Sequence record: MN871451.1
DNA: 64,000 nucleotides
Strand: one strand, 5' to 3'
A model generated the notes under the pieces. That model saw only the letters and a program-made list of their open reading frames with translations, did no database searches and was not told the DNA's origin. A program made the position numbers and the translations under genes. This document shows, piece by piece, positions 3,011 through 63,562 of the stretch. Numbering within the stretch: position 1 is the first letter of the stretch; every line of letters begins with the position of its first letter.

Positions 3011-3017
3011 ACATAAA

Positions 3018-3039
3018 CGGACTGGTCTTTTCCAGTCCG
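3018..3039 (+). terminator. Intrinsic terminator-like hairpin after sbcC
   Basis: CGGACTGG-tctttt-CCAGTCCG; flanked by CATAAA on the left and TTTATG on the right. Confidence 0.6.
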
Positions 3040-3048
3040 CTTTATGCA

Positions 3049-3063
3049 TATATCACTCTAGTG
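3049..3063 (+). promoter_or_regulatory. Putative early (virion RNAP) promoter TATATCAC
   Basis: TATATCACTCTAGTG; the same motif lies upstream of genes at 14682 and 39248; resembles the phiKZ early motif TATATTAC. Confidence 0.55.
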
Positions 3064-3092
3064 TAATTACCCCAACTAAAGGAGTTGCAATC

Positions 3093-3734
3093 ATGCAAAA
3101 CATTTCGAAAATGACAGACCGTTTAACCAGTTACGGGAAGCCGACACGTACCGGTGAAATTGCGATCCAACATCAGACCGTGTTCATTCGTACCGCAGCG
3201 TTAGGTGACGATGATCTGGTCGACAATAACTACTCGGGTTTTTCCGATGCCCGACTCACTGACATCCTTCATTCTGCACCGTTCCAGGTAGCCGTCAACA
3301 ACATCGCGCAATGTTTCGAAGACAACGTCGCCAATGTCGACGAGCAATTCTTCCCGGTCATTGATTTCAATGCGGGTTACGAAAAGCTCCGTCAGACGGT
3401 CGTTAAAACGCTGCCTGAAATTTCAGATTTGCGCATTGAAATTCGCCAGGCGCAGGTCTTCTCTCAGAACGTCTATTATTTCGTGAAGAATAAAAAGGAC
3501 GTAACCGAGTTTGAAGACCAGTTCCGTCAGATGTTGGCGGAAAACGATCTCCCGGCAGAAACGGTCAATCTGATCTTTACCTGTCATACCTCGACCACAC
3601 TCAGTCAGATGTATGAGGTCATGACGATCCTCAGCATTCTGCTGCGTGAGACCGCAAAAGAAGCCATGTTTGTACCGGGCCGGGTTATCGGTAACTTCAG
3701 TCAAATCACGCGAGATAACCGCTATGCGCTTTAA
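3093..3734 (+). CDS. Hypothetical protein (probable early gene)
   Basis: ORF 2925..3734; start moved to ATG 3093, which follows an AAGGAG RBS. Confidence 0.75.
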   Translation: MQNISKMTDRLTSYGKPTRTGEIAIQHQTVFIRTAALGDDDLVDNNYSGFSDARLTDILHSAPFQVAVNNIAQCFEDNVANVDEQFFPVIDFNAGYEKLRQTVVKTLPEISDLRIEIRQAQVFSQNVYYFVKNKKDVTEFEDQFRQMLAENDLPAETVNLIFTCHTSTTLSQMYEVMTILSILLRETAKEAMFVPGRVIGNFSQITRDNRYAL

Positions 3735-4047
3735 GGAATCTGAAGCCGGAGAAATCCTGCTGGCGTTAGAAAGAACGCGTGAAAGTCGCGCCGCTGAAAA
3801 TCTACCTTATATCCAGGTCATTCGTGCGGAAGTCAGAGGTTACGACGAGACCGTTAAGACCTTAGCGGCGAAGAAAGTCGTTAAGTTCCTGGGGTATACG
3901 CCGATGATTATCCCAGAGCTCGTCAACCTCACGGAGAAGCTCGAACAGCCTAATCCCTTCCCAATCTACATTGGGAACGAAACGCTCTTTGAGAGCGATC
4001 TGAATACGGTTATAGGCGATTTCCCTGACGAGAACCAAAGAGGTTAA
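3724..4047 (+). CDS. Hypothetical protein
   Basis: MRFKESEAGE... from ATG 3724, overlapping the upstream gene end (translational coupling). Confidence 0.65.
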   Translation: MRFKESEAGEILLALERTRESRAAENLPYIQVIRAEVRGYDETVKTLAAKKVVKFLGYTPMIIPELVNLTEKLEQPNPFPIYIGNETLFESDLNTVIGDFPDENQRG

Positions 4048-4048
4048 C

Positions 4049-4642: not shown

Positions 4643-4664
4643 TTCTGCGTATTAGGAACATAAG

Positions 4665-4694
4665 CTCTCTCCTCCGCAGAAGCGGAGGAGAGAG
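4665..4694. terminator. Bidirectional terminator hairpin between convergent genes
   Basis: CTCTCTCCTCCGC-agaa-GCGGAGGAGAGAG, 13-bp stem, with a T run shortly after. Confidence 0.75.
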
Positions 4695-4712
4695 TCTCTA
4701 TGCTTCTTTTTT

Positions 4713-6678: not shown

Positions 6679-7104
6679 GTGAATTACTTTTTCTTGCGTT
6701 TTTTACCGTACTTGTATTATTTCATACGGGAGCAATACCGTTTGGATAATACCAGAGAACCACCCCCGAAAAGGAAGCGTTACTTCTATCGTACGATAAT
6801 AACCATTTTAATTTTCACTCTTGGTTTGTCGTCAACGGTAGGTTATGTCAAATACCGTGAATTATATCGTAATTATAATGCCGCGTTAAAACGTCTTTCC
6901 GATGCCAGTAATCAACCGGTATCAGGAATCAGCCGCGATCGTTATGAAGCCGATATTCATACGTTGACCATGGAAAAATTTGGCTGGGAAAATGACGCCC
7001 GTCTGGAACTCTCTGAACTCCAGAGAATTTGTACCAAGACGCCCAGCGCGTGCGACGCCCAAAGCCATCACATCATTGAGGAATTTCAACGCCGTCACCC
7101 TTGA
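6679..7104 (+). CDS. Membrane-anchored protein with coiled coil
   Basis: GGAGG RBS, GTG start; TM-like segment TIITILIFTLGLSSTVGYV after a basic patch; C-terminal CxxxxxxC. Confidence 0.65.
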   Translation: MNYFFLRFLPYLYYFIREQYRLDNTREPPPKRKRYFYRTIITILIFTLGLSSTVGYVKYRELYRNYNAALKRLSDASNQPVSGISRDRYEADIHTLTMEKFGWENDARLELSELQRICTKTPSACDAQSHHIIEEFQRRHP

Positions 7105-7160
7105 TTTCTTACGCGACGCTTTATTCTTCTGAACATACTTTGAAACAGGAACTTCTGAAC

Positions 7161-8759
7161 ATGAAGATTGAGCAACCGTGGGAAGGTGAATTCCCAGAAC
7201 CGGGCAGTTTTAATCTTGTTTTATTCTGCGACGGCGGAAGTAATACCCAAACGTTACTTTCTGGCTGGGGCATTCACGGATATTCGTACCCGGTTGCGGA
7301 CAAGAAAGAAGCGAAGATTAAAAAGGCTAAGGGTGCGTTTACTAACATCGGTTATGTCGACGGTAGACAACACCGGTGTAAAGATGTCGTCACTAAGGCA
7401 GATGAAGAGACGGGCTTCACTGGGCAGGTAGATAAAAACTATCTTATCTTACACGCCGATGAAAATAAAACGGTGAAGCCTGTCAACCCCATCAGCTTTA
7501 TTGATGCATACGGTGGTCAGTACAAAACCAGTAATAACTTTACTGAGTTAATGGGGATGTTAAACAGTCTCACAATTGTCAAAGAAAAGAGCCCAAAAGA
7601 GTCTGTTATTTTTGCGGACTCGAAATATGTTTTAGAAGGGTTACTTTTCTATCGTGTTAACTGGGAAAGAAACGGTTGGTTAACTGCTGACCGTCGACCT
7701 GTCCAAAACAAAGATCTTTGGCAATTGCTCTGTTCTCTCTTCGACAGTATTGTTGAGGAAGGGAAAACCAGAATGTTATTTGGGTATATCCCAGGTCACG
7801 CTGGTTATACAGGGAATGAACGTGCTGATTACAACGCCAACCGCGGAATGATTCTGGAACGCGATGAACCCGGTAAAACCGTTTATCTCATTTCAGACCG
7901 TAAAGGATACGTACAAAACACCAAAACCAGTAATCGCTTACTGGAACAACGTTGGTGGTATGCGTTAACTGACCGGACACATTACAAAGTTGACTATGAC
8001 GATCGCTACGTTTATTTCTTCGGGAACCACGGTAACGACACCGAAGTCGACATGATCGGTAAGGCCACTGCCACTGCTAAAGTAGCCATCCTCTTCGCTA
8101 AGGAAAAAGAACCTGTCCTGGAATTACTCGGAGAGTTTCTGAAGAGCCGGTACTACGACGGCACTCAGATCATGACGCTGGGTCATCTTGAAAATATCCT
8201 TAACGCAGATCGATACGTCAGTCTGATACAGGACAAACGTTCTGTCTTATGGGACGACGCCGAGAAGAGCACTATCCGGTCTCCGGATAAAGTTGCGCTT
8301 ATTGAGGAGCTGAGACCGACCTTTTTAGGTTTCCGTCTGTTGACGCGGTTTGAGACACTTCTGACCATGTTAGGATACGGGTTTACAGGCAAGGGAAAAA
8401 CGACGATCACGGATATCACTTCATACTGTGTGAAGACGACCCAAGAAGGGAAAAAGAAACCTGTTACAAAACCCACTGAGGCCATGGACCCGCCGAATAA
8501 GGCAATTTCTGTTACAGCTAATTACCAACTGGCTGACGGGACAACAGGGAAAGCCACAATCAAATTAAAAATAGGACAAGATATCCCGTTAAGGAATACG
8601 GTCAACGCGTTGGGTTCTGAAGACCTCAGAATACGCGTCATCACATGGCCAGATGGCACGCGTGCTTTCCGTTACGCCACGTTAATGGAAGTGGACGGTG
8701 ACACGCTGTTTACTGCGTCGCTCAATTCTAACCTTTTTGAGATCACGGGTAAACTATGA
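7161..8759 (+). CDS. rnhA: Ribonuclease HI with C-terminal extension (phiKZ gp155-like)
   Basis: RNase HI motifs FCDGGS, NNFTEL, DSKYV, NKDLW, GHAG-GNERAD. Likely start is ATG 7161 (track starts at TTG 7101). Confidence 0.9.
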   Translation: MKIEQPWEGEFPEPGSFNLVLFCDGGSNTQTLLSGWGIHGYSYPVADKKEAKIKKAKGAFTNIGYVDGRQHRCKDVVTKADEETGFTGQVDKNYLILHADENKTVKPVNPISFIDAYGGQYKTSNNFTELMGMLNSLTIVKEKSPKESVIFADSKYVLEGLLFYRVNWERNGWLTADRRPVQNKDLWQLLCSLFDSIVEEGKTRMLFGYIPGHAGYTGNERADYNANRGMILERDEPGKTVYLISDRKGYVQNTKTSNRLLEQRWWYALTDRTHYKVDYDDRYVYFFGNHGNDTEVDMIGKATATAKVAILFAKEKEPVLELLGEFLKSRYYDGTQIMTLGHLENILNADRYVSLIQDKRSVLWDDAEKSTIRSPDKVALIEELRPTFLGFRLLTRFETLLTMLGYGFTGKGKTTITDITSYCVKTTQEGKKKPVTKPTEAMDPPNKAISVTANYQLADGTTGKATIKLKIGQDIPLRNTVNALGSEDLRIRVITWPDGTRAFRYATLMEVDGDTLFTASLNSNLFEITGKL

Positions 8760-9133
8760 TCAAAATACTTTTAGCGGTCTTCGGACCTAAACTCTTTACG
8801 ACGAAAGGTCGACGTGTTTTAATATTGGGTTCTTTTTACACGCTACTTTCTGGTCGTTCGGGTGGATGTCAACGATTAGCTTCGAGTATGAATCGTCGCT
8901 TAAACTTGACAACGGATTCCAAAGGATTATTGCTAGGTACAATTCTCCCTGAAATTCTTTGGGATGAAAAACAGTGCGAAGCGATTAGAACCTTACCGCA
9001 CGAAAAGGTAGCTAATTACTTCGAAGAGATGATCCCCCGCTGGTTAAAAGAAGGCGTGGAGGATGGCGAGTTCACACTTCGTCAGGAACTGAAAAATATT
9101 GTCAACATGCATTCGTTGTCGGCAGTGTCATAA
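8756..9133 (+). CDS. Hypothetical protein
   Basis: 125 aa, 4-nt overlap with the RNase H stop. Confidence 0.65.
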   Translation: MIKILLAVFGPKLFTTKGRRVLILGSFYTLLSGRSGGCQRLASSMNRRLNLTTDSKGLLLGTILPEILWDEKQCEAIRTLPHEKVANYFEEMIPRWLKEGVEDGEFTLRQELKNIVNMHSLSAVS

Positions 9134-9136: not shown

Positions 9137-9169
9137 GAGAATGGGAGAGGGTTGACCTCTCCCATTCTC
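9137..9169. terminator. Bidirectional terminator hairpin
   Basis: GAGAATGGGAGAGG-gttga-CCTCTCCCATTCTC between convergent genes. Confidence 0.75.
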
Positions 9170-9175
9170 TTATGT

Positions 9176-14106: not shown

Positions 14107-14134
14107 AGACAGAGAGGGATTCCCCTCTCTGTCT
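14107..14134. terminator. Bidirectional terminator hairpin
   Basis: AGACAGAGAGGG-attc-CCCTCTCTGTCT between convergent genes. Confidence 0.75.
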
Positions 14135-14140
14135 TATGCG

Positions 14141-14681: not shown

Positions 14682-14696
14682 TATATCACCTTATTG
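14682..14696 (+). promoter_or_regulatory. Putative early promoter TATATCAC
   Basis: TATATCACCTTATTG, about 85-100 nt upstream of the GTG at 14782. Confidence 0.5.
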
Positions 14697-16075: not shown

Positions 16076-16109
16076 AAAGAAGAGTGGGGTCTTTACCCCA
16101 CTCTTCTTT
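16076..16109 (+). terminator. Terminator hairpin followed by TATG
   Basis: AAAGAAGAGTGGGGT-cttt-ACCCCACTCTTCTTT; TATG at 16109-16112. Confidence 0.7.
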
Positions 16110-16148
16110 ATGCACCTTCACTCTTTTATTTTTTGGAGCGCTCCCGCT

Positions 16149-16442
16149 ATGTCCGGAACAAATTCTACCGCTGTAAAAAATTTACTTAAAACGATCGAAG
16201 AGGACATTGAAAATTTTTTCAAGGAAGACCGTCACTCGGAAGCGGATGCAGTGTATTTTCTAGAGCAGTTGAATAACCGTATTTTTAGCACCATTTTCAC
16301 CAAAGAAGAAAAGATAGAATTCGTCGCCATTGCCGCCAGTCATTTCTACAGCCACGGTTTAACCCGATACCGTAACAGGACACCAAAAACCCTTTGGGAG
16401 AAGATTCGCTTTATTTTTAGTAAGGAGGACATATGGCGTTAG
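16149..16442 (+). CDS. Hypothetical protein
   Basis: MSGTNSTAVK... from ATG 16149 after GGAG; overlaps the next gene start. Confidence 0.6.
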   Translation: MSGTNSTAVKNLLKTIEEDIENFFKEDRHSEADAVYFLEQLNNRIFSTIFTKEEKIEFVAIAASHFYSHGLTRYRNRTPKTLWEKIRFIFSKEDIWR

Positions 16443-17500
16443 GCGTCAGTAATTACGTTAAGACCTTAAGTAACTCAGCGCAAACTGCTAAGGCTGCCGC
16501 GCAAACCCAAAGCTCATTAGTGGCAACGGGTGTTAAGGATTCGATGGTGGCCGTAGATGGTTACGGAAAGGAAACGAAAACCGTATTGAGTAACATGAAG
16601 AATATGGTTTTAGGGAAACTCGCTGAAACAAAGAATTATCTTTTAAACACCACTATCAGTGATTTAGGGTCGTTGAATGACCTGCTCACTCAAGCCAGCG
16701 CAGTAAAGAAAGACATCAGCGAATATACCAGTCAGCTGAGTAACGAGATTGGTCAAAGTATCAGTACCGTCAAAGGGATCTCTGATGAGGTTATCAATGG
16801 TGCTACCAGTACGCTTCAGGAAATTAACAGCACCGTCGATAGTACCTTTAGCGATGTCAATGGCGCGGTTACCCAGTTGACCTCTGCCGGAGATATCCTG
16901 AACGCGAATAATCTGATCAGTAGTGTTAATACCTTATTGGCCAATGCGGATATGACCTTTCAGAATTTGGAAGACAAACTGTCGATGACGGCACTGAAAT
17001 CTTCTATTCTCCAGCAGGCTTCATTTCTCGGACTCTCTAACGTTGTCTCCGCTGTCTACAGTAGCGATTCCTCTAATCCGACACTGACCGCGGCAATGGG
17101 CGACAGTCTACCGACGGTGTTGGCTTCTGGGAACCTGTCAATGGTCAAGGCGATGGTAGAAAGTTTAGGCGGTGTCTACATCTTACAGAAAGCCCCTGAT
17201 GCCGTACAACAGATTCTCCAGAACTATCGTTTTGGTAAAGTCATTGACGCGAACCAGTACAGTACTTACGCGACAGAGTTAGTCTCGGTCTTATCCTCCA
17301 TTGACCCACGTTGGAATGCTTCGCAGTTCACTCCTACAGGACATCGTCTGAGTGTCTTCCGGAATATTTCCACCAATGCGAAAACAGTACTGAATACATT
17401 ACCGGAATACGCTTACCAGATTGCAGTGGTTCAGCACTTTACAGAGAACACTGTGGTTGGATTAGCAAAACAACAATACACGTTTATCGCACTTGCATAA
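16433..17500 (+). CDS. Putative virion structural protein
   Basis: 355 aa, AAGGAGG RBS, S/T/N/A-rich helical composition, next to tail genes. Confidence 0.6.
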   Translation: MALGVSNYVKTLSNSAQTAKAAAQTQSSLVATGVKDSMVAVDGYGKETKTVLSNMKNMVLGKLAETKNYLLNTTISDLGSLNDLLTQASAVKKDISEYTSQLSNEIGQSISTVKGISDEVINGATSTLQEINSTVDSTFSDVNGAVTQLTSAGDILNANNLISSVNTLLANADMTFQNLEDKLSMTALKSSILQQASFLGLSNVVSAVYSSDSSNPTLTAAMGDSLPTVLASGNLSMVKAMVESLGGVYILQKAPDAVQQILQNYRFGKVIDANQYSTYATELVSVLSSIDPRWNASQFTPTGHRLSVFRNISTNAKTVLNTLPEYAYQIAVVQHFTENTVVGLAKQQYTFIALA

Positions 17501-17503
17501 AAC

Positions 17504-17533
17504 AGTAGAGAGGGCTTAATTGCCCTCTCTACT
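17504..17533 (+). terminator. Terminator hairpin
   Basis: AGTAGAGAGGGC-ttaatt-GCCCTCTCTACT. Confidence 0.7.
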
Positions 17534-17591
17534 CTATTTACACAGCACCGTTTATTGATGTAGAAAATATCTTTTCGATAAGGATGATGAG

Positions 17592-18395
17592 ATGCCTGCT
17601 GTTAAAAACCAGCCTGTATATCTTTACAACGGCGTTAAACGCACTGTCCCGGAAATCGTGGGGATTACGGGTATGAAAAGAATCACGGTTTACCAGAGAA
17701 TAAAGAGAGCGTTGGTAAAAACTCCCGGTATGAAGGATGTCGGACCCCTCTTCGTAAATTTAGTGGGGTACAAGAAAAGACTTTATCCTGTATTGAGTGA
17801 AGTCCTTACGTTAAGTGAGATCGTTGAACGGTACCGGTTAGATTACAGGAAAACACAATCTTCTTTATTCCGAGGAGATAGTGTTCTTACCGTATTGGAA
17901 CGCCGAGCTAAAAAGAGTCGACCAGAAATTATACACCCGAAGACCCGCGCAAAATTGAGAGCAAGTTTCTCAAGGATAAAGAACCGCAGCGGGAAATCGT
18001 TGACTCTTCCAGTTCATTGGACTTCGTACAGAAAGGCGTTTGACGAAATAGGTTATCCTAGAGAAGAAACTGATTTCTTGTGGATTGAAAAAACAGATGA
18101 GCCCCTCAATGCAATGAGTTGTTACTGGGCACCCGCTGAAAGACGCGCTGACTATACGCGGTACACAACGCAACCAGGGAGAATAGCAACCATCAACGTT
18201 GAGTGGGAAGGTCAGCACGTCTCTGTTGCAGAACTCGCCAGAGAAAAGGCAATCCCTTATACTACGTTACTTTATCGAGTGAAGAAAGGTTGGCCGAAAG
18301 AGGACTGGTTTAATCCAATAGACGAGAGTTGTCAACGACTCGCTCCGCGGGTAGCAAAACGTACCGTGAGTACGTTAAAATTAGAAACAGTATAA
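17592..18395 (+). CDS. Degenerate HNH homing-endonuclease-like protein with repeated helical DNA-binding modules
   Basis: Core HWTSYRKAFDEIGYP...SCYWAP aligns by eye with phage HNH (W-SFENF-DMG-RP...NCRWAT). C-terminal EWEGQHVSVAELAREKAIPYTTLLYRVKKGW module, with two related N-terminal copies. Confidence 0.6.
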   Translation: MPAVKNQPVYLYNGVKRTVPEIVGITGMKRITVYQRIKRALVKTPGMKDVGPLFVNLVGYKKRLYPVLSEVLTLSEIVERYRLDYRKTQSSLFRGDSVLTVLERRAKKSRPEIIHPKTRAKLRASFSRIKNRSGKSLTLPVHWTSYRKAFDEIGYPREETDFLWIEKTDEPLNAMSCYWAPAERRADYTRYTTQPGRIATINVEWEGQHVSVAELAREKAIPYTTLLYRVKKGWPKEDWFNPIDESCQRLAPRVAKRTVSTLKLETV

Positions 18396-18429
18396 AAAAG
18401 AGAGGGTGAAAACCCTCTCTTTTTTTTTT
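18394..18429. terminator. Bidirectional intrinsic terminator
   Basis: AAAAAAGAGAGGGT-gaaa-ACCCTCTCTTTTTT plus a T run; between convergent genes. Confidence 0.85.
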
Positions 18430-33407: not shown

Positions 33408-33432
33408 CAGGGCGAGAAACGTACTCGCCCTG
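33408..33432 (+). terminator. Terminator hairpin after vRNAP beta
   Basis: CAGGGCGAG-aaacgta-CTCGCCCTG. Confidence 0.6.
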
Positions 33433-37420: not shown

Positions 37421-37444
37421 AAAGAGAGGCGTTGGCCTCTCTTT
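37421..37444 (+). terminator. Intrinsic terminator
   Basis: AAAGAGAGGC-gttg-GCCTCTCTTT plus a T-rich tail. Confidence 0.8.
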
Positions 37445-37524
37445 CTTTTATTTTCTTAGTTTTATGATAATACTTAAAATCTGATTTAATTTAAGAGACA
37501 CTTATTACGAAGAGAGGATTTATC

Positions 37525-38408: not shown

Positions 38409-38434
38409 GAGAGGAGGGCGTCTGCCCTCCTCTC
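38409..38434 (+). terminator. Terminator hairpin immediately followed by TATG
   Basis: GAGAGGAGGGC-gtct-GCCCTCCTCTC then TATG at 38435-38438. Confidence 0.7.
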
Positions 38435-38506
38435 TATGCTGTAACATTTCAAACCTTACAGTTACCGTTCCTACTATGTAAACGTAAAACTTATTGAGGT
38501 GTAGCC

Positions 38507-39238
38507 ATGCAACCATCCAGTCTGCTCAACGGCATCAAGGGTCTCAACGCCAGTGAAACCCAACGCCTAGTTGCTTTAGCACAGGCGGTGAAGGAAACCA
38601 TCGAAGGAGTGATTGTCCCGGGTCAAGTCTTCGTGTACGGCGTCCATGCTATCGGTGAAAAGTATCAACTCGAAAACGTGGAAATCGTCATCGACCCGAG
38701 CGTTGAAACGTATCGCGTTGAAGGAAATGTCCTTTATCTGAATGCGCCGATCGATAACCCGGATGCATTGACCTATCTTTCCCTGACCGAAGGGATCGGG
38801 TATTACCTGAAACCGGAAACGAAATTCCGCGAAGAAGCGCGTACTGCCGGTACTAATTGGGTGACCAGTTACAGTAATGAGCTGTATAAAATCTACCTCA
38901 GTAATGAAGACAAGCGGAGTGAATTACTGACGTCGCTGGCAAAAGAGTTTTACTTCCTCCTGAAGAACGCTCACCCGTTACTCGTTGATCACTATAACGA
39001 AGCAGACAGCTTTGTGAGCGACTTTGTAACAGAAGGGGTAAAAGCTACTGATCTTTACGCTGCGATTCATCAGGGGCTGTTTAAGGTGTTATTCGACGAC
39101 AGTAACGCCACGACGTTTGGTAACATCTACCAAACTATTATCCGTTCCGATAACAGCACCGGTCAATACACGAAGCCTACCTCGGCAGAATTCATGACCG
39201 GGTATCTGTTTGAATGTCTCGGTGCCATTTCAAACTAA
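38507..39238 (+). CDS. Hypothetical protein
   Basis: 243 aa, GAGGTG RBS. Confidence 0.72.
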   Translation: MQPSSLLNGIKGLNASETQRLVALAQAVKETIEGVIVPGQVFVYGVHAIGEKYQLENVEIVIDPSVETYRVEGNVLYLNAPIDNPDALTYLSLTEGIGYYLKPETKFREEARTAGTNWVTSYSNELYKIYLSNEDKRSELLTSLAKEFYFLLKNAHPLLVDHYNEADSFVSDFVTEGVKATDLYAAIHQGLFKVLFDDSNATTFGNIYQTIIRSDNSTGQYTKPTSAEFMTGYLFECLGAISN

Positions 39239-39247: not shown

Positions 39248-39262
39248 TATATCACTCTATTG
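39248..39262 (+). promoter_or_regulatory. Putative early promoter TATATCAC
   Basis: TATATCACTCTATTG heading a cluster of small genes. Confidence 0.55.
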
Positions 39263-39851: not shown

Positions 39852-39874
39852 TTTCGGCGGTCAGGTAGTTTAAT

Positions 39875-39899
39875 AAAGCGGGGAAATCCCCCGCTTTTT
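39875..39899 (+). terminator. Intrinsic terminator
   Basis: AAAGCGGGG-aaatc-CCCCGCTTT plus a T run. Confidence 0.8.
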
Positions 39900-40484: not shown

Positions 40485-40515
40485 AAGAGAGGCGCTGGCC
40501 TCTCTTTCTTTTATT
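40485..40515 (+). terminator. Intrinsic terminator, near-copy of the one at 37421
   Basis: AAGAGAGGC-gctg-GCCTCTCTT plus TCTTTATTT. Confidence 0.8.
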
Positions 40516-40532
40516 TTTCGAAGAGAGAAACT

Positions 40533-41054
40533 ATGCGCCTCAAAGTCAGTAAATTGTCCTTTCTGAAAGCCGTAGAAGACCTGGCAAAATATCGAATTGA
40601 CACCACCACCTTCGGTAGACGTGTAGGTGAAACGACGCGTGCGACCACGGATATAACGTATAAACGCATCGGGTCTAAACTGATCATTGAATATCTGGGA
40701 ATGAATGCGAGGGAGTATCGTTGCCGGGGATTCCGTTTATCGCTTCAACTCGGTGTCCCGGTTCAGATCACCAGTCTCGAAGCATTAAAAATTGATATCA
40801 CGGAATTTTATCGACTCTTCAAAAAACTGAGACTGGATACGTTTAAGCACGCATTTCAACGTTATGTACTCTGGACTTTCCTGGACGTTTACGGTACCCG
40901 GCACTACGTATTGCATTTAATGTACGCCACCGAGAGAGACCCAGAGTTTTATCCGCTAACCCTCAACGAAGATTACGCATCAAGATACCCAGTTGAAGGG
41001 AACATCGAAAAACGCAGTCGGCGTTTTCTGGAATGGTTAAACTTCTATGCTTAG
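40533..41054 (+). CDS. Hypothetical basic protein
   Basis: 173 aa; ends in the hairpin GCTTAGGTC-gttt-GACCTAAGC (41049-41070). Confidence 0.7.
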   Translation: MRLKVSKLSFLKAVEDLAKYRIDTTTFGRRVGETTRATTDITYKRIGSKLIIEYLGMNAREYRCRGFRLSLQLGVPVQITSLEALKIDITEFYRLFKKLRLDTFKHAFQRYVLWTFLDVYGTRHYVLHLMYATERDPEFYPLTLNEDYASRYPVEGNIEKRSRRFLEWLNFYA

Positions 41055-41120
41055 GTCGTTTGACCTAAGCAGGTTAATCGTCTCATTGTTTTTTTTTTGG
41101 TTTCATTGAACGGAGGAGAG

Positions 41121-42129: not shown

Positions 42130-42161
42130 AGGAGAGAGGGAGCAAATGCTCCCTCTCTCCT
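42130..42161. terminator. Bidirectional terminator hairpin
   Basis: AGGAGAGAGGGAGC-aaat-GCTCCCTCTCTCCT between convergent genes. Confidence 0.78.
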
Positions 42162-42171
42162 CATTTATGTT

Positions 42172-45839: not shown

Positions 45840-45865
45840 ATTTGTTTTCCTGAAGAAAGCTAACT

Positions 45866-45910
45866 GGTCATACGAAACACAAAAGAGAGGAGGGATTAAA
45901 ACCCCTCCTC
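45866..45910 (-). promoter_or_regulatory. Hairpin plus TGTTTCGTATGACC late-promoter module
   Basis: GGTCATACGAAACA at 45866-45879 on +; stem GAGGAGGG/CCCTCCTC at 45887-45910. Confidence 0.65.
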
Positions 45911-45915: not shown

Positions 45916-48291
45916 CTACCAAGTTAAATCAATATTTCGTATAGTTAATCGCTGAAGATTGATGGTGTCTCCCGCAGCGTTGTTACGAAGAATAACGTTC
46001 AAAGTAAAATCGGCGGACGTGATAGGGTCAATGTTCCCGATGGCGCGAAAAGGTTTGATTGTCCCATTATCGTTAAGTACCGCAGTAATAACAGCAAAGC
46101 CACCGATAATGCTAATGCTACCTTCTATGTTGAAAATCGACCCGCCAGCGGCCTGCGTCAAAGAAGGACCGACTAGTACCCGTGTAGGCGACGTGTTATC
46201 CAAAAAACCAATTCCAATTGTTTTCGCCCCTAAGTTACCCGCGGTGGAACCCTCTAGTTTGAAAGTGATTTCATCATTGAGACGAATAGACCCTACGGGG
46301 TAGTTAATGACCTTATAGACCGATCCTGGAGTCGAGTCTGTGATTGATACACTGTTTTCAATCACGTTGTCGTTTCCGTGGAAAGTGAATCGGGAACTGT
46401 TAATCAGTTTCACTCGATTTTTTGTTGCAATCGCCGCTAAAGATGAAATGGTAATAGGGCCCGTTAAATCAATTAACCCCTCAATAGAATCGTTCGCTAC
46501 GAAAGCCCCGCCATTTACTGACGAGATGATTGCCTTAAGTCCTTTAATAGGGTTACTGATTCCTGCCGAAGTCATCGTCCTTAAAATTGCTACGTCTGGT
46601 TTAATACCAATATAATTGATGTTTTTGAACTGGCAGTTCGTTACCAATGAATCCGCAGCAGAATGGTACGTATCACAAATTACCGCTGTTTTCGTGACGT
46701 AATTTATCGTGATATTTTCAAACAGGTTATTGCTACAAGGAACACGATCACCACCATAACTCTCGAAGGATAAAATGTTATTACTGTTTGTCACCCCGAA
46801 GATCATGCCGTTTCGAATGGAACTATTAGTGAAGGAGGAGAAACGGCAAATTACCGACGGCGCCGCGGTATTATTGAATACCAGTGTAAAACCATCAATA
46901 TGACAGTTATCGCCGCTTTCTGCCCATGTTATCATGGCGTTAGCATTAAGGGTCGTATCGGCAATCGCAGTGAGGTTGGTAATGCGAGTATCGTGAGAAC
47001 CAAATGCCAGTTCACTGATTCTTCCGCGAAAAGTGATATTGATATTATCAAAACGCGTACGACAAAAAGTATTCCCATAAACCACCGCGCGGGCTTTACC
47101 TGAGATGTTACGGAAAACGCAATTAAAAGTTGCGCTGTCGCCAGTCCAATGGTCCCAAGTGTCTACAACAAAGTCTTGAACGATGGCGTTTTCACAAACA
47201 AATAGTGGCTGATTAAAACGAGCATTGTAAGCGGGCTGATTTGCTTGCATAATGGTCAGATCAGAACCAGTATAATCGACAGGAATATCCAACGTGATAT
47301 TGCTACCGGATACACCTATTACTTTACAAAGCTTCATGTAAAACGGGATAAGAAAACCACCGTTAAGAATCCCTCGCACGGATGAGATCCTCACTAAATC
47401 GCCTGTTTTGTATTTACTGACGAGAGAGGGGTCAATGCCAACCACGTTACTCCCGTAGGTGGAGGTAAGATTGTTCTTAGGGACATTACTCACATATTCC
47501 GGGTGATAATTGCCCGGTGCGAAAATAGCGCCTTGCATCCAAGTAGTATCAATAGGAGTTAATGTTTTTAATGTTGCCCCGTTTCCATTAAGGACAGAAT
47601 TACTAGGGATATAAATAGGTCCAGAAATGGAATAGGTACTTTTACAAAACGAGACGGGGTATTTTCCGGCCGCAACTTTTAGTGCTTGTTGGATGGCAGA
47701 AAGTGAGTCCGTACCTCCCGGGACTGCACCAAAAAACTCTGGATAAATTACGGGCTCAGAGAGTACCCTTTCCCAGTAGAATCCGTTTCCCGCGGCGATT
47801 GTCCCGCCGTCATCCGTTGCTGATCCGATTCCGGCGATAAATTCCCCGCCGCCTGTTTTTCCACCCGCTACCCAACTTTTCAACTTTACGCGTTGTCCTG
47901 CGTACAGAGGCGATAGTGTCCGTAACTTAGCGAAGGAATCTACACCGTTAGTAAAATAATCTAACCCTCGTAACGTCTGCCCGGAGATGTACCGAACAGC
48001 GACGCCATTAATATCTACGAGCGGCGTGTAAGAACCCCCACCTTGGTTGACGTAACCCTGTACCGCGGTTTTGGTTACATCCGTGTAAACAAAGTAAGAC
48101 TCTCCCTTCTCCGTTCCATCTGCACCTTCTGCGATTGAGTTGAAGGCTTTGTCGAACAACAAGACTGAACGCAGTGTTGAGATATCTGTGTTATTGGTCT
48201 CCGTCTGTTCAGAGACCACAGGGAGTAGAGTGTTTTCAGTCAGCGTAGTAGCAGGGTTCAACTCGCTAATTTTCTGTATTTCATTAGACAT
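45916..48291 (-). CDS. Tailspike / polysaccharide depolymerase with KISEL anchor
   Basis: Anchor, linker module GQRV-L-SW--GG-TGGGEF...DDGG-I...FYWER, pectate-lyase-3-like PEFFGAVPGG-DS--AIQ-A, beta-helix repeats. Confidence 0.85.
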   Translation of the reverse strand: MSNEIQKISELNPATTLTENTLLPVVSEQTETNNTDISTLRSVLLFDKAFNSIAEGADGTEKGESYFVYTDVTKTAVQGYVNQGGGSYTPLVDINGVAVRYISGQTLRGLDYFTNGVDSFAKLRTLSPLYAGQRVKLKSWVAGGKTGGGEFIAGIGSATDDGGTIAAGNGFYWERVLSEPVIYPEFFGAVPGGTDSLSAIQQALKVAAGKYPVSFCKSTYSISGPIYIPSNSVLNGNGATLKTLTPIDTTWMQGAIFAPGNYHPEYVSNVPKNNLTSTYGSNVVGIDPSLVSKYKTGDLVRISSVRGILNGGFLIPFYMKLCKVIGVSGSNITLDIPVDYTGSDLTIMQANQPAYNARFNQPLFVCENAIVQDFVVDTWDHWTGDSATFNCVFRNISGKARAVVYGNTFCRTRFDNINITFRGRISELAFGSHDTRITNLTAIADTTLNANAMITWAESGDNCHIDGFTLVFNNTAAPSVICRFSSFTNSSIRNGMIFGVTNSNNILSFESYGGDRVPCSNNLFENITINYVTKTAVICDTYHSAADSLVTNCQFKNINYIGIKPDVAILRTMTSAGISNPIKGLKAIISSVNGGAFVANDSIEGLIDLTGPITISSLAAIATKNRVKLINSSRFTFHGNDNVIENSVSITDSTPGSVYKVINYPVGSIRLNDEITFKLEGSTAGNLGAKTIGIGFLDNTSPTRVLVGPSLTQAAGGSIFNIEGSISIIGGFAVITAVLNDNGTIKPFRAIGNIDPITSADFTLNVILRNNAAGDTINLQRLTIRNIDLTW

Positions 48292-48313: not shown

Positions 48314-48360
48314 GGTCATACGAAACAAGGCAATGAGGGGACCTAGGTCCCCTCATTGCC
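48314..48360 (-). promoter_or_regulatory. Perfect 32-bp palindrome plus TGTTTCGTATGACC module
   Basis: GGTCATACGAAACA at 48314-48327; GGCAATGAGGGGACCT/AGGTCCCCTCATTGCC at 48329-48360. Confidence 0.68.
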
Positions 48361-48366
48361 TATAAC

Positions 48367-48601: not shown

Positions 48602-50647
48602 TTAAGAAATCCAAACGTGTTCATTGGTGAAATATGCCGTTCCAACAAAACCGTTTAAGTACTCTTGAACTTTTGCCTTGACTGTACCGTTTGGCGCACG
48701 TAACCAGACCCACACGTTATTCCAATCGGTTGTCACCGCAGATACAGATTTGATTGACGATTGTATTACGTTCCCGGCAGAGTCGTAAAAATCCACTCGA
48801 AGTGCGACGTAACCAGCCGTCAACGAGGTAATTTTGATTTCGGCCTCCGCGTGGAAAATATCTCCGCCGCGCAGTGTCACGTCCTGCCAGTAAGAGACGT
48901 TACGTACGCTTCCTTGTGTAATTTTTCGTGAGTGCGGTGAATTAGGGTTAGAATAATTCGTAGTATCAATCGTATAAGTGAGGTCGGCGTTAGTGTAACT
49001 CGGTGTCCATGCGGCAGTTTGATACTGGTTGATCAGAATAACGTTAAGGGCACTACAAGGTCGCATGGGACGACTGGCGTTATCCATGTTTCCAGAGGTC
49101 ATTTTGTTCCTCACCCTTAAGGTCCCGATCAACTGGTAGTTATCCCCCTCTACACCTACGATCTCGGTAGTTCTCCTGACTCCCGTCATGTATTTACTGG
49201 TGTCAGTTCCATCAATATCGACGTGGGCACCGCCAGTGTTGGTAATGAAGACGAGGTAAGGGCGACCCGTACTATTTTCTACCGGAATACCGCTCCATGA
49301 GTTCGCGTTCGGTCCGCCTCCCATTGTCCCCCCTTTCATGATCAAATAGGGTTGGTTTTTGGTTGAGGTGTACGAAAGTCGAATATGAGGGTTGTTGTTA
49401 TTGTTTTCCAAGTGACAACCGTGGAGCTCGACGTTAGATTGATAAATATCAACTGAGATGTCGCAATAATCAAAACTGGTTCCAAAGAACCTGACATCGA
49501 TACTCGAGGCACTCCCTGATAAGTAGAGCCCGGTACCGTCGAAAGTAAAATTACAACAATCTGCAATCACGCCGCCGTAAATAGTCACGTTCTCATTGGA
49601 ATCAGTATTCGCATAAAAGGCCATCCCTCGGCGCCAACATTGTCCGATGATCGGACTGTATAAACGAATGAGGTAAGCACTCTTCCCGTTAAAACAAACT
49701 CCGTCCCTAAACCCAGAGACCTTAAGATTGTAGAAGGAAATATTGTGCGCATCGACACCAAATGACACGCCGTCTACGACACTGTTAGTGTCGGGTTGAT
49801 GAGTATTAATTAAGGTACGCTGAACGCGAATATTATCAAATTTCCCTGGATTAGCCGCAGGTGACAAATAGCCGCTGATTGTTAAGGTATAACCCGTCGT
49901 AACAGAGGGCAGCGACAAAAGTACTGCATTACGCATATCGATCACTAAATCGGTCGGGAAATTTACGGTACTGACCGCGTATACTTTCCCTAAACACGTT
50001 AGTGCAATGCCATTTTTGGCACAGTAGTTGACCGCTTTTTGAATATTACTAGTATCGTCCAGTACGCCGTCCCCGACTGCACCAAAGTCCTCAAAAGACA
50101 ACTGATCTGTAATAATCCGTTGCCAGTAGAATTCATTCCCGGCAGCAATCGTGCCGTTGTCATCCGCATTTACCCCTAAACGCGCAACGAAAATACCCCC
50201 ACCCGTAACCCCGTCTTTGTAGTAACTCTTCAGCGTGACACGCTGTCCTTGGTACCATGGTTTAAGCGTCCGTAATGCGTCGAAACTCTCTACTCCTTGT
50301 AACATGAATAAAGAGTTGACAATATGCGCATTCGTCGCGTAGCGAACTTGTGTCGTACTGTCTGACATTAATGCAGAGTAAGTCCCGTTCCCTTGGTTTA
50401 CATACCCCAAGACATAGTCTCGTGTACTGTTTTCGTAAACAAAGAAAACATTCCCCTCTGTAGTTACACTGAGCCCGGCAGCAATCGTGCTGTACGCGTT
50501 CTCAAAACCTAACGTTTCTCTGAGGGTACCAATACTAACTTTTTCGGATTCGTTTCCATTCGCTTCTGAGAGCGGAAGAAACGCATTCTCTGACGGATTA
50601 GAGCTGGGCGATAGTTCAGAAATTTTCAATGCAGTGATATCGGTCAT
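48602..50647 (-). CDS. Tailspike / depolymerase with KISEL anchor and C-terminal carbohydrate-binding-like domain
   Basis: Start at MTDITALKISEL (GGAG RBS); FEDFGAVGDGVLDDT--IQKA; beta-helix; C-terminal jelly-roll-like VDFYDSAG. Confidence 0.87.
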   Translation of the reverse strand: MTDITALKISELSPSSNPSENAFLPLSEANGNESEKVSIGTLRETLGFENAYSTIAAGLSVTTEGNVFFVYENSTRDYVLGYVNQGNGTYSALMSDSTTQVRYATNAHIVNSLFMLQGVESFDALRTLKPWYQGQRVTLKSYYKDGVTGGGIFVARLGVNADDNGTIAAGNEFYWQRIITDQLSFEDFGAVGDGVLDDTSNIQKAVNYCAKNGIALTCLGKVYAVSTVNFPTDLVIDMRNAVLLSLPSVTTGYTLTISGYLSPAANPGKFDNIRVQRTLINTHQPDTNSVVDGVSFGVDAHNISFYNLKVSGFRDGVCFNGKSAYLIRLYSPIIGQCWRRGMAFYANTDSNENVTIYGGVIADCCNFTFDGTGLYLSGSASSIDVRFFGTSFDYCDISVDIYQSNVELHGCHLENNNNNPHIRLSYTSTKNQPYLIMKGGTMGGGPNANSWSGIPVENSTGRPYLVFITNTGGAHVDIDGTDTSKYMTGVRRTTEIVGVEGDNYQLIGTLRVRNKMTSGNMDNASRPMRPCSALNVILINQYQTAAWTPSYTNADLTYTIDTTNYSNPNSPHSRKITQGSVRNVSYWQDVTLRGGDIFHAEAEIKITSLTAGYVALRVDFYDSAGNVIQSSIKSVSAVTTDWNNVWVWLRAPNGTVKAKVQEYLNGFVGTAYFTNEHVWIS

Positions 50648-50674
50648 TTCACGACTCCGATGTAAACAAAAAAT

Positions 50675-50778
50675 GGTCATACGAAACAAAAAAGAGAGGA
50701 GCTTTTCCGTATCCTTCTCTAGTTAATGTGCAATAAACCAAAACGTAATCTTTCAAGCTGTTAATCGTATGTACGATT
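50675..50778. promoter_or_regulatory. Divergent late-promoter region of the spike array
   Basis: GGTCATACGAAACA at 50675-50688 (minus-strand TATG) and AATCGTATGTACGATT at 50763-50778 (plus-strand TATG within an imperfect palindrome). Confidence 0.6.
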
Positions 50779-50807
50779 GACTATTAGAGAGCTTAAGAGG
50801 CAAAATA

Positions 50808-54160: not shown

Positions 54161-54200
54161 TGAGGGGGTCGTCAGACCCCCTCAGTTTTGTTTCGTATGA
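54161..54200 (+). promoter_or_regulatory. Hairpin plus TGTTTCGTATGA late-promoter module
   Basis: TGAGGGGGTC-gtca-GACCCCCTCA at 54161-54184; TGTTTCGTATGA at 54189-54200. Confidence 0.65.
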
Positions 54201-56202: not shown

Positions 56203-56246
56203 TAGAGAGGGGCCTTTTGGCCCCTCTCTATTTGTTTTCCTATGAC
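56203..56246 (+). terminator. Hairpin plus TATGAC module
   Basis: TAGAGAGGGGCC-tttt-GGCCCCTCTCTA; TATG at 56241-56244. Confidence 0.68.
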
Positions 56247-59043: not shown

Positions 59044-59081
59044 AAGGAGGAGGGGGTTCCCCTCCTTAAAAGGAAAAATAA

Positions 59082-61247: not shown

Positions 61248-61250
61248 ATT

Positions 61251-61291
61251 AATTGAGAGAGGGAGTATCCCCTCTCTCAATTTTCTATGAC
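61251..61291 (+). terminator. Hairpin plus TATGAC module
   Basis: AATTGAGAGAGGG-agtatc-CCCTCTCTCAATT; TATG at 61286-61289. Confidence 0.68.
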
Positions 61292-61319
61292 TTCGTCTTA
61301 TTCACATAGAGGTGTAATG

Positions 61320-63305
61320 ATGTTAACTGATTTTAATAAACCGCGAGGGAGTAACGGTGAATATTCTCTTTTAACCGTGGGGTCCGTAACTGAGTTAAGG
61401 GCTTTAGAGCCTTGGTTTGACGGCCAACGTGTTCTATTAAAACGAGCGGTTGTGGGCGGACCTGACGTAAACGAAATAATGACGTACAGGGCCAGTTCAA
61501 CAGTCGCAGATAACGACTACAGTGTATTTAAAACAGCTAAAGGAGCTAACTGGCTCCTCGATACAACAAAACCTATTAACGTATGGATGGCTGGTTTTTC
61601 TGTCTCTTTAAATAACCTATCCCAGTGCATCAACAAAATAACCAGTGACATCGTCAAAATTGTTATCGGTAGAGGCTATATCGCAAATGGAACTTACCGT
61701 CTGCGCGTACCGCCATTAGATAACGCTACCGGCGAAACAGTTTATAAAATGACAGCGACAGTGCGTATCCCGCCGTTTGTTTCTGTTATTGTTGACACTA
61801 ACCAGACTTGGGATTTTAGTGCCTTTACTACCGGGAATGGCGTAGAAATAACCGGTGAGTTTACTGGACTTACTCGATCTGCAGCAAACCCCTTCACTAA
61901 TAACGCAGGGAGTTCTGCCAGCTACACTGAAGTACTGGACACTAATGCACTTTTCATTTTAGGTCCCGGGTACGACAAAACTACGTTCCATGGTATTTCT
62001 TTAGGAAATACAACATACCCATCTGGTGGTTTTGTCCATACTCGCGAAGTAAAAATCACTGGCGTAAAAGTTGCGCAATTTTATGGCGGAATCAGGATTG
62101 GTTCTACTGATACGTATTTAGATGTGGTGGAGAACTGCGCTTTTTATCGAAACGGATATGGTATCGTCACCGATGCAGGCGTGAACTGCGTTAACTCCGG
62201 TGAGAACATGCGCTTCGTCAACTGCCTCATTGGTGACAACTATTTGGGCGGAGTCTACCGAAACGATACTGTCCATATGTTTAAATATTTTGGTTGTAGT
62301 TTCGACTATAATACAAACGATGTTGTTTTTTATTCGCCAGTGAACATAGGTCAGGATACGTTGATCGAGTGTCACGTTGAAGGCTTCCGTTATTTAGCCA
62401 ATTGCCCAACTCGTACAACAGGCGCTGGCGAAAATAATTTTAAAATGATCGGCGGAAATATCTTCATGTACGCGTTTGTTAATGATCCTTACCGTGGAGT
62501 CAGGACAATTGGTTTTGCGACCACTACACGCACCGCTATCGACCTTGACAACGTAAACATTTTCTGTTACGGCCCGCACGTTAATAGCGCTTATGGGAGT
62601 TACAAGGCGTACGATCCCACTAACCAGATCAAAATAAGAATACGTTACCCTTTACGCGGACAAACCTATCGTTTTCTGCCATCTTACGATACCTCTGACG
62701 GTTACATTTTGAATAATACAGGGCTACTGTTTAATGGTACCGCTGGCGCGGCCTTACCGACTGCCAGGGCAATTGGACAGTGGTACGTAGTTGCTAACGG
62801 TTCAACTATCGTCTATGGCTCTGCAGCAGATGCAGATTCGGATGGCCTGATCCCAGTGACAATTACTGCTACAAGTACAACTAACTCGGTTAACCTTCTC
62901 TGGGGTACGCCAATTAATAACAGTAACAGTCAACAGAAATTTCATGTGTCCTGTTCAGTCAAAGCCGGTGCTGCAACTACTGGCAACGTTTACGTACGTG
63001 GTGTGTGTCGTTTAGTTTCATCTCAGACTTTTACTAATAACGCCACGACTAACGTAGTGTCAATGAGCGAAAATTATAGTGGATATGCCTTGGGTCCACA
63101 GCAAGATATTTTAAACTCACTAACAAAAACTGGCATCACCCTTACCGCAGACAATTACATGGGTACCTACATGCTTTCATGCGATACCGGTACGTCTCAG
63201 TACGGTTACGCTGGACTTAACTTTACCGGTTTCGTTGGTACCATCCAAGTTAAGCTGCCTGCGGTTTGGTTTTCCGATCAACATCCGACTTTAGGGTATT
63301 TGTGA
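61320..63305 (+). CDS. Anchor-less tailspike / exopolysaccharide depolymerase
   Basis: GAGGTG RBS; MLTDFNKPRGS N-terminus; SGEN...SFDY...HVE beta-helix motifs; CBM-like C-terminus. Confidence 0.83.
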   Translation: MLTDFNKPRGSNGEYSLLTVGSVTELRALEPWFDGQRVLLKRAVVGGPDVNEIMTYRASSTVADNDYSVFKTAKGANWLLDTTKPINVWMAGFSVSLNNLSQCINKITSDIVKIVIGRGYIANGTYRLRVPPLDNATGETVYKMTATVRIPPFVSVIVDTNQTWDFSAFTTGNGVEITGEFTGLTRSAANPFTNNAGSSASYTEVLDTNALFILGPGYDKTTFHGISLGNTTYPSGGFVHTREVKITGVKVAQFYGGIRIGSTDTYLDVVENCAFYRNGYGIVTDAGVNCVNSGENMRFVNCLIGDNYLGGVYRNDTVHMFKYFGCSFDYNTNDVVFYSPVNIGQDTLIECHVEGFRYLANCPTRTTGAGENNFKMIGGNIFMYAFVNDPYRGVRTIGFATTTRTAIDLDNVNIFCYGPHVNSAYGSYKAYDPTNQIKIRIRYPLRGQTYRFLPSYDTSDGYILNNTGLLFNGTAGAALPTARAIGQWYVVANGSTIVYGSAADADSDGLIPVTITATSTTNSVNLLWGTPINNSNSQQKFHVSCSVKAGAATTGNVYVRGVCRLVSSQTFTNNATTNVVSMSENYSGYALGPQQDILNSLTKTGITLTADNYMGTYMLSCDTGTSQYGYAGLNFTGFVGTIQVKLPAVWFSDQHPTLGYL

Positions 63306-63499
63306 TGATTTATATCTACAAAGATACTGTGCGAGAGAACGTTTATTTTCTTTCCAGAATTGATTTGGGGGAGGCTATCGTTTTCTTTGAAGAAGTAGAA
63401 AACTATCAGGAAGCCGCACTTGGGTTCTTATCGGAAAAGGGTCTGGATGGTTCTTTTCTTTTAGAAGACAGGACTAGCGAAGACGATTCCGGTAGTTGA
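63305..63499 (+). CDS. Small acidic protein coupled to the spike (possible chaperone)
   Basis: TGATG overlap with the spike stop; 64 aa. Confidence 0.5.
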   Translation: MIYIYKDTVRENVYFLSRIDLGEAIVFFEEVENYQEAALGFLSEKGLDGSFLLEDRTSEDDSGS

Positions 63500-63523
63500 A
63501 TTGTTTTATAGGTTGTTCATAGC

Positions 63524-63562
63524 GAGTAGGGCCGATCGGCCCTACTCTTGTGTTTTTATGAC
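63524..63562 (+). terminator. Perfect 24-bp palindrome plus TATGAC module
   Basis: GAGTAGGGCCGA/TCGGCCCTACTC at 63524-63547; TATG at 63557-63560. Confidence 0.68.

Follow-up and report, generated by a model that had tools for sequence, protein, structure and literature searches.

Hairpin-adjacent TATG in a Klebsiella jumbo phage resembles a phiKZ-type terminator motif and lies beside probable late promoters

Whether the tetranucleotide TATG beside an intergenic hairpin starts a transcript or ends one is the question raised by a stretch of 64,000 nucleotides (nt) of sequence record MN871451.1, referred to here as the window. An initial annotation of this stretch, made from the sequence alone, described a recurrent module of GC-rich hairpin and TATG between genes and took the TATG for the late-promoter core of the phiKZ non-virion RNA polymerase (nvRNAP). 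It proposed that the terminators double as promoters, or that the hairpin is itself a promoter element, with late antisense transcripts arising where the TATG faces a gene on the opposite strand. The explanation we favour, to which we assign a probability of roughly two in three, is that two known chimallivirus signals sharing a TATG core lie side by side, namely a terminator motif and a downstream late promoter.

The window corresponds to positions 124001-188000 of MN871451.1 (KpYy_2_45; 100% identity), and KpLz_1_41 matched it likewise at 100%. The annotated KpLz-2_45, of the genus Siatvirus, was 99.5% identical to the window, while vB_KpM_Centimanus (Centimanus) and FBKp24 were ~76% identical at the nucleotide level. 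The MN871451.1 phage belongs to the genus Siatvirus; its whole genome is 302,439 bp with a GC content of 46%, and its host is Klebsiella. Several near-identical records within MN871447-MN871453 are titled 'Serratia phage', are flagged UNVERIFIED_ORG, state Klebsiella pneumoniae as the host and carry no annotation. Genes were taken from our own caller (a filtered set of 351 genes, the gene starts being approximate). A phmmer search of the whole genome identified homologues of chimallin and of all five phiKZ nvRNAP subunits (E 1e-12 to 1e-69), and this is therefore a phiKZ-like, nucleus-forming phage, for which phiKZ was an apt frame of reference. The polymerase matches (gp55, gp68, gp71-73, gp74 and gp123; E 8.6e-26 to 3e-69) were all located outside the window. 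A search of the literature on the Klebsiella jumbo-phage clade (Siatvirus, Maaswegvirus, Centimanus) found no transcript mapping.

Hairpins were sought with a stem finder written for the purpose, because a generic sigma-70 and terminator scan of the first 20 kb was no better than shuffled sequence (17 sites against 21 expected) and missed most hairpins. The stem scan yielded 43 inverted repeats in the window. Applying a cut-off for strong hairpins of dG (folding free energy) <= -13.9 kcal/mol left 21, all of which were intergenic. The exact GAGAGG/CCTCTC arms were present in 10 of these and a close relative of the motif in 5 more, and the 5' arm was purine-rich in 19. Genome-wide (dG <= -12), 100 of 130 hairpins fell within intergenic DNA, which comprises 7.9% of the genome; 72/100 stems were purine-first (GAGAGGG...CCCTCTC) and 11 pyrimidine-first. 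The purine arm resembles a Shine-Dalgarno sequence. No hairpins were found in divergent gaps in the genome-wide classification, and the T fraction was 0.54 in sense tails versus 0.39 in antisense tails. Rfam covariance models gave no match to the 64-kb window at the gathering threshold. The hairpins were similar to canonical Rho-independent terminators in their energy, their place after stop codons, their T-rich sense tails and, at 18392-18427, their A-tract/T-tract symmetry. They differed in that the U-tract of the TATG class is interrupted at a fixed place by AUG, and in that a generic scan finds a minority of them. By these properties the intergenic hairpins are assigned as oriented intrinsic terminators, many acting both ways.

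TATG was present at all 12 plus-strand coordinates of the initial annotation and, within its two minus-strand modules, at 45869-45872 and 48317-48320. The mirror CATAs at 3012, 4659, 9129 and 63518 were also present, and the TATGs at 4699, 9171, 14135 and 42166 do lie between convergent genes. A further TATG, at 17496-17499 (-), was absent from that list. To obtain a composition-matched background, each tail was shuffled (42 tails for the 21 window hairpins, 198 tails for 99 classified genome hairpins). At offsets of -2 to 20 nt from the stem, TATG was found in 19/42 window tails (15/21 hairpins) against 5.4 +/- 2.1 expected, a count reached by none of 3000 shuffles. At offsets -2 to 6 there were 13 TATG tails against 2.3 by shuffling; at offsets 7-20 there were 6 against 3.4, a count that is not significant alone. 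The genome gave the same picture, with TATG in 36/198 tails at offsets 0-6 (9.1 +/- 2.9 expected; none of 2000 shuffles) and no enrichment at offsets 7-21 (12 against 19). Among the 256 four-mers after stems, TATG was the most enriched (z of 9.6 genome-wide), followed by the overlapping ATGC, CTAT and TTAT. TATG enrichment is thus confined to the stem end, 0-6 nt. Stem-adjacent TATG occurred in only about a quarter of the hairpins, the remainder having mostly plain T-tracts; the pattern is real, although 'genome-wide' overstated its reach.

Two classes of TATG were distinguished by the base that follows. Genome-wide, the base after a stem-adjacent TATG was C or T in 30/39. The TATG + C/T class lay within 0-6 nt of the stem in 30/33 (3/33 at offsets >= 7) and occurred in any gene context: 14 of its tails led toward a gene start, 19 ran antisense or toward a gene end, and convergent terminators could carry it on both sides. 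The TATGA class near hairpins faced a gene start in 14/18 (4 were non-sense); half of it was 7-24 nt away from the stem, with a T-rich tract in between. The split by next base was significant for context (Fisher p = 0.02) and for distance (p = 0.002). Intergenic TATGA was biased toward the sense orientation (sense:antisense 50:12, and 21:3 for TATGAC), a bias far weaker for TATGC (21:13) and TATGT (29:21), and about half of the 50 sense TATGA sites (24, by hand count) lay 27-50 nt ahead of a start codon, mostly of large, structural-size genes.

In the window, the stem-adjacent sites (3043, 3012(-), 4699, 4659(-), 9171, 9129(-), 14135, 16109, 17496(-), 38435, 42166 and 63518(-)) were 0-5 nt from the stem and were followed by C or T, with A at two mirror sites. 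The promoter-type TATGA sites near hairpins (37463, 45869(-), 48317(-), 54196, 56241, 61286 and 63557) numbered seven; a T-rich tract precedes them, the stem is 3-18 nt away, and start codons follow 30-63 nt downstream. Further promoter-type sites were 50677(-) and 50768(+), which have no significant hairpin, and a second TATG at 38475. TATGA(C) sites facing gene starts are probable late promoters, and 'terminator then late promoter' is a reasonable description of the co-directional sites. To this extent the proposed terminator-promoter units hold, given the orientation bias, the layout in relatives described below and the nvRNAP homologues; the stem-adjacent TATGs belong with the terminator motif.

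The transcripts of phiKZ itself have been mapped. Its late promoter is TATG, with G as +1, and is read by the nvRNAP (Ceyssens 2014; Yakunina 2015, PMC4666361), and gp123, the beta-like subunit, has a pocket in its beta-lobe that binds the TATG of the non-template strand (PMC12809450). In Oxford Nanopore Technologies (ONT)-cappable-seq of phiKZ, a stem-loop with TTAT behind it was common to the 61 intrinsic terminators mapped, the consensus being BCCYCCCCHWWDGGGRRGGBYTTATKYYGT (Putzeys et al. 2024, PMC10914365), and the main 201phi2-1 terminator motif (motif A) resembles it (PMC11512511). A hairpin followed by TTATG is therefore already described as a terminator signature in the phiKZ phage group.

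The first 150 kb of phiKZ were rerun with the same pipeline and compared with start sites P001-P066 of 149, which cover 118 kb (bioRxiv 10.1101/2023.10.13.562163 supplement). The 84 phiKZ hairpins had TATG at offsets 0-6 in 42/168 tails against 8.1 +/- 2.7 expected, with a peak at -1 to 2; T or C followed the stem-adjacent TATG in 47/56, and 18 hairpins had TATG on both strands, reproducing the mirror CATA. When the 44 stem-adjacent TATGs of the first 118 kb were compared with these 66 start sites, none lay 3 nt or less from one. Of the published 3' ends T001-T033, the nine checked against a stem-adjacent TATG (T011-T015, T018, T019, T021 and T031) all fell -1 to +2 nt from its G. Of the late start sites compared, 16/27 sit at TATG, and TATGA is the ending of many published start sites of the late and middle classes. 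Start sites after such terminators (P016, P017, P023, P049 and P054) were located 4-30 nt farther on, at another motif. In phiKZ, stem-adjacent TATG marks transcript ends, not starts.

The elements of the MN871451.1 phage agree with the phiKZ and 201phi2-1 terminator motif in the intergenic or 3' GC-rich stem-loop, in having Y-T(T)ATG/T no more than a few nt behind it with pyrimidines next, and in often doing so on both strands; they agree with phiKZ in the positional peak and in the preference for T or C after TATG. They differ in that their stems depart from the pyrimidine-first consensus CCYCCCC...GGGRRGG of the phiKZ motif, making them a variant of it; in the share of hairpins with TATG (about a quarter, versus ~45% in phiKZ); and in a slightly larger offset from the stem (0-5 versus -1 to 2). 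The known phiKZ-type terminators are from Pseudomonas phages, whereas the genome here is that of a Klebsiella phage with 46% GC, and its 3' ends are placed by analogy. The late-promoter candidates likewise agree with phiKZ in a sense TATG(A) core 27-50 nt upstream of structural-gene starts and in the five encoded nvRNAP subunits. They differ in a consensus that extends to a pyrimidine-rich leader and TATGAC, and in start sites that are predicted from sequence. Among the gp123 side chains that contact TATG, 6/14 were identical, 3 were conservative (H185Y, Y406W and N186Q) and 5 differed, on a pairwise alignment of 28.5% identity in which the stretch 395-403 is uncertain. The key stacking residues of the pocket were kept (F151, H331 and the Y/W replacements), and the comparison is compatible with TATG reading, though not decisive.

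Orthologous hairpins were retained at similar stability in 10/10 cases in Centimanus and FBKp24, at ~76% nucleotide identity, with compensatory stem substitutions at 16076 (three changes), 17502, 33408 and 38409, and with complete stem replacement at 14107 and 42130. Stem-adjacent TATG was conserved at 3/5 sites (9137, 16076 and 38409), and at 9137 Centimanus keeps both TATGs and the hairpin, the stem of which shows a compensatory change. The relatives also conserve the promoter-type TATGs at 37463 and 38475. In FBKp24 and Centimanus, TATGA stood 28-42 nt upstream of the ATG for 9/10 tail-fibre-region genes examined, in most cases preceded by a T-rich spacer and, ahead of that, a hairpin unrelated in sequence, the genes themselves being non-orthologous and encoding different depolymerases; FBKp24 gp105 had a TATG without a hairpin. 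FBKp24 gp107 was preceded by the same stem-to-TATGAC stretch and downstream leader as 56203..56244, the sequence upstream of the hairpin being different. Such conservation would be expected if a terminator and a promoter stand in succession and are selected independently.

A mechanism in line with these observations can be proposed. In about a quarter of the terminators, the U-tract would begin with Y-TATG-Y 0-6 nt after the stem, as the counterpart of the stem-loop and YTTATK, and by analogy with phiKZ the transcript would be released at or within 2 nt of the terminator G. The hairpin would form as the polymerase is held on a weak U/A hybrid, at a point where the last base of the RNA is a pyrimidine and the next to be added is G; Y(-1)G(+1) is the general elemental-pause consensus of multisubunit polymerases. 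The late promoter would be a separate TATGA(C) 27-50 nt upstream of late start codons, mainly of tail-fibre and structural genes, with G as the presumptive +1 of a phiKZ-type nvRNAP. Such promoters would often lie 3-18 nt behind the T-tract of the previous hairpin because each tail-fibre cassette ends in a terminator.

Several points weigh against this pairing of terminator and late promoter. Every RNA end position in the MN871451.1 phage is transferred from phiKZ, a distant relative (gp123 28.5% identical), and the comparison covered 66/149 start sites, by a method, ONT-cappable-seq, that can miss weak or unstable antisense starts. Stem polarity is opposite to that of phiKZ, where 28 stems were pyrimidine-first and 15 purine-first. 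Stem-adjacent TATG is not essential for termination, about three-quarters of the hairpins being without it, and in the relatives it was lost at 2/5 sites: at 14107 a hairpin of different sequence is followed by GTTATC (TTAT kept, G lost), and at 42130 in FBKp24 a different-sequence hairpin has no TATG. The classes overlap: at 61286 (offset 3) and at genome positions 89793 and 111834, a TATGA placed like a promoter is stem-adjacent too. The mirror sites 9129 and 63518 are TATGA rather than TATG + C/T. TATG-type terminators showed no association with early or late transcription units in a crude classification (3/15 versus 5/23, p = 1), so that either of the two phage polymerases may read the terminator motif.

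A further proposal, which we regard as doubtful, is that the same gp123-type beta-lobe pocket may read TATG at both transcript ends and in one register: at the start, with G as +1, and in the non-template strand after a hairpin, where it would act as a pause and release signal that replaces much of the U-tract and leaves the 3' end at or beside the G. Such dual reading would explain why TATG persists at the terminators of a distant relative, and on either strand according to which one is terminated. In the literature searched, no discussion was found linking terminator TTATK with promoter TATG.

Among the rival explanations, that of the initial annotation survives best, and we still consider it unlikely: every hairpin-adjacent TATG would be a late-promoter core, terminators would double as promoters, and antisense RNA would arise at the convergent and mirror sites. 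In its favour, the late promoters of phiKZ have been proven to use a TATG core, homologues of the polymerase are encoded here, and both phiKZ and phiR1-37 reportedly make antisense RNAs; on tails facing no upstream sense gene, TATG was mildly enriched (8 tails versus an expected 3.5, a number that 33 of 2000 shuffles attained). The phiKZ data speak against it, with none of the 44 stem-adjacent TATGs at any of the 66 start sites compared, 3' ends that map there instead, and starts beyond the terminators that use a different motif. The next base also differs, being A in the promoter-placed class and C or T in the stem-adjacent class, and the gene that follows 3043 has an early-type promoter of its own, 2 nt downstream of that TATG. 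Late antisense promoters at the four convergent and four mirror sites are accordingly unsupported, these sites matching the YTTATK motif. The idea that the hairpin is itself a promoter element fails on the TATG promoter candidates without one (50677(-), 50768(+) and FBKp24 gp105) and on the many hairpins without TATG.

RNA processing was also weighed, in which the hairpin-UAUG junction would be cut by an endonuclease (host RNase E or RNase III, or a phage nuclease) and the hairpin would protect the 3' end; we judge this improbable. Single-stranded A/U-rich RNA beside a stable stem, as found here, is typical of RNase E sites, ONT 3' ends cannot tell termination from processing, and the Centimanus orthologue of window 7101-8759 is annotated 'ribonuclease'. 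Some 201phi2-1 terminators, most of them with the motif, stopped transcription between two reporter genes in uninfected Pseudomonas, which speaks against a need for a phage nuclease, although a host nuclease may have cut the RNA, and the motif lies at the normal distance of an intrinsic terminator from its stem, within a T-rich tract. phiKZ gp155 bears the same product name as the Centimanus orthologue ('ribonuclease', putative RNase H).

It is very improbable that CATA-stem-loop-stem-TATG is not an RNA signal but a long inverted repeat acting at the DNA level, where a protein would bind or a cruciform would form. CATA is the reverse complement of TATG, the 18 two-sided phiKZ hairpins fit such a palindrome, and at 9137 RNAfold extends the helix through CAUAA/UUAUG, likewise in Centimanus. 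The distances of the TATGs from the stem are unequal (2 and 4 at 4665; 4 and 1 at 9137), so the palindrome is not extended in register, and at most sites TATG is present on one side only, that of the T-rich tail. An extended palindrome was rejected as a general explanation on these two grounds. Chance, or a by-product of T-rich tails and the ATG start codons of downstream or small genes, is barely credible: the tails are T-rich, a genuine start codon preceded by T accounts for a few TATGs (40532 and 16148) and offsets 7-20 alone are not significant, but as a general explanation it is refuted by the shuffles (0/2000 and 0/3000), by the ranking of TATG above all other four-mers and by open reading frames (ORFs) from the stem-adjacent ATG with a median of 14 codons, a length on which small-ORF start codons were rejected as the source, and the same positional peak is seen in phiKZ.

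A second promoter type was also observed. TATAT[CT]AC has 21 intergenic copies, oriented 21:0 toward the next gene (window 3049-3056, 14682-14689 and 39248-39255, and 18 more in the genome). The extended consensus, ..TTCAAA..TTTAA.A.CTATATCAC..TATTGAA, closely resembles published phiKZ early promoters, ..ATTCAAAC..TTTAAACAGTATATTAC, and TATAT[CT]AC is probably the early promoter of the MN871451.1 phage, read by the virion polymerase. Two split polymerase genes sit among the head genes of the window: 27266-28897 is similar to the beta-prime N-terminus (AR9 7S00 chain d, E 2e-7, PDB sequence search), and 28913-33400 encodes a 1495-aa beta-like protein that resembles bacterial beta. In the PDB sequence search, the window polymerase genes matched only bacterial beta and AR9 beta-prime, not the phiKZ nvRNAP, and a third ORF had no match. 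The two split genes probably encode virion RNA polymerase subunits, an assignment made because the five homologues of nvRNAP subunits are all located in other parts of the genome.

Table 1. Predicted terminators and promoter candidates of the window (positions in window coordinates).
Feature	Position	Strand	Remarks
Terminator hairpin	3015..3042		dG -15.1; TATGC 3043-3046 (+) and TATGT 3012-3015 (-), both stem-adjacent
Early-promoter-like TATATCAC	3049-3056	+	3' of the 3015..3042 hairpin and TATGC
Bidirectional terminator hairpin, convergent genes	4665..4694		pyrimidine-first stem; TATGC 4699-4702 (+), TATGT 4659-4662 (-); terminator-type
Bidirectional terminator hairpin, convergent genes	9137..9169		TATGT 9171-9174 (+); TATGA 9129-9132 (-) overlapping TAA stop 9131-9133
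Terminator hairpin, convergent genes	14107..14134		TATGC 14135-14138 (+)
Terminator hairpin	16076..16109	+	overlapping TATGC 16109-16112; second TATG 16148-16151 holds annotated start codon
Hairpin between two + strand genes	17502..17535	-	T-rich tail and TATGC 17496-17499 on - strand only
Canonical bidirectional terminator (A-tract, stem, T-tract), convergent genes	18392..18427		no TATG
Terminator-like hairpin	33408..33432	+	no TATG; kept via compensatory changes
Terminator hairpin 37421-37444, T-rich tract, TATGA 37463-37466	37421..37466	+	promoter-type; 63 nt ahead of next gene
Terminator hairpin 38409-38434 and stem-adjacent TATGC 38435-38438	38409..38478	+	separate conserved TATGT 38475-38478
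Canonical terminator hairpin and T-tract	39873..39899	+	no TATG
Terminator hairpin and T-tract	40485..40506	+	sole TATG (40532-40535) made up of T and the gene 40533 start codon
Hairpin overlapping end of gene 40533-41054	41048..41071	+	T-tract farther downstream; no TATG
Terminator hairpin, convergent genes	42130..42161		TATGT 42166-42169 (+)
Hairpin 45887-45910, T-rich spacer, TATGACC (TATG 45869-45872)	45865..45910	-	promoter-type; 34 nt before start of tail-fibre gene 43845-45839
Hairpin 48328-48361, TGTTTCG spacer, TATGACC (TATG 48317-48320)	48314..48361	-	promoter-type; 30 nt before start of gene 45916-48291
TATGA and same TTTTGTTTCG leader	50677..50681	-	34 nt before start of gene 48602-50647; late-promoter candidate without hairpin
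TATG without hairpin	50768..50771	+	37 nt before start codon 50808; TATG-ACGATTGACTATTAGAGA context also before FBKp24 gp105
Hairpin 54161-54184, GTTTTGTTTCG spacer, TATGA 54196-54199	54161..54199	+	31 nt before probable start 54226; terminator then late promoter
Hairpin 56203-56230, TTTGTTTTCC spacer, TATGAC at 56241	56203..56244	+	promoter-type
Short GC hairpin	59048..59066	+	gene 59082 begins 16 nt farther on; neither T-tract nor TATG
Hairpin 61251-61282, TTC, TATGAC at 61286	61251..61289	+	32 nt before probable start 61317
Hairpin 63524-63547 and TATGAC 63557-63560 (+)	63518..63560		promoter-type; 51 nt before gene 63607
Mirror TATGA	63518-63521	-	faces antisense; other side of hairpin 63524-63547

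Three loci in Table 1 merit comment. The plus-strand tail of the conserved hairpin at 17502..17535 has no T-tract, and the TATG there overlaps the stop codon of gene 16433-17500; 17496-17535 looks like a terminator against antisense transcription, or a weak sense terminator. The TATGT at 38475-38478, 32 nt before the start codon at 38507, is likely to be a promoter. Two TATG promoter candidates, 50677(-) and 50768(+), stand back to back in the divergent gap 50648-50807, which separates two tail-fibre genes. No significant hairpin was found at the 50677 site (fold z-score of 0.43), and a degenerate hairpin remnant was noted on the minus-strand side of the gap.

From 42172 to 63600 in the window, nearly every tail-fibre or depolymerase gene has the form of a cassette of hairpin, T-rich spacer, TATGA(C), ~30 nt and ATG. 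That this layout is kept in three genera despite different genes suggests that the regulatory shell is conserved when receptor-binding genes are exchanged. Each cassette would be an insulated terminator-promoter unit, which bears on cassette swapping between phages.

What is new here is, as read from the stems, a version of the known phiKZ-type terminator motif with reversed stem polarity, in a Klebsiella clade. TATG alone is insufficient for promoter calls in these genomes, and the overlap of terminator TTATG with promoter TATG merits a direct biochemical test. For the unstudied Klebsiella jumbo-phage clade of Siatvirus, Maaswegvirus and Centimanus, members of which are therapeutic candidates, the analysis offers a usable first transcription map, with probable early promoters (TATATYAC), probable late promoters (TATGA(C) 27-50 nt before start codons) and two kinds of predicted terminator. 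The terminator and promoter grammar of phiKZ would reach from Pseudomonas phages to an enterobacterial phage of 46% GC.

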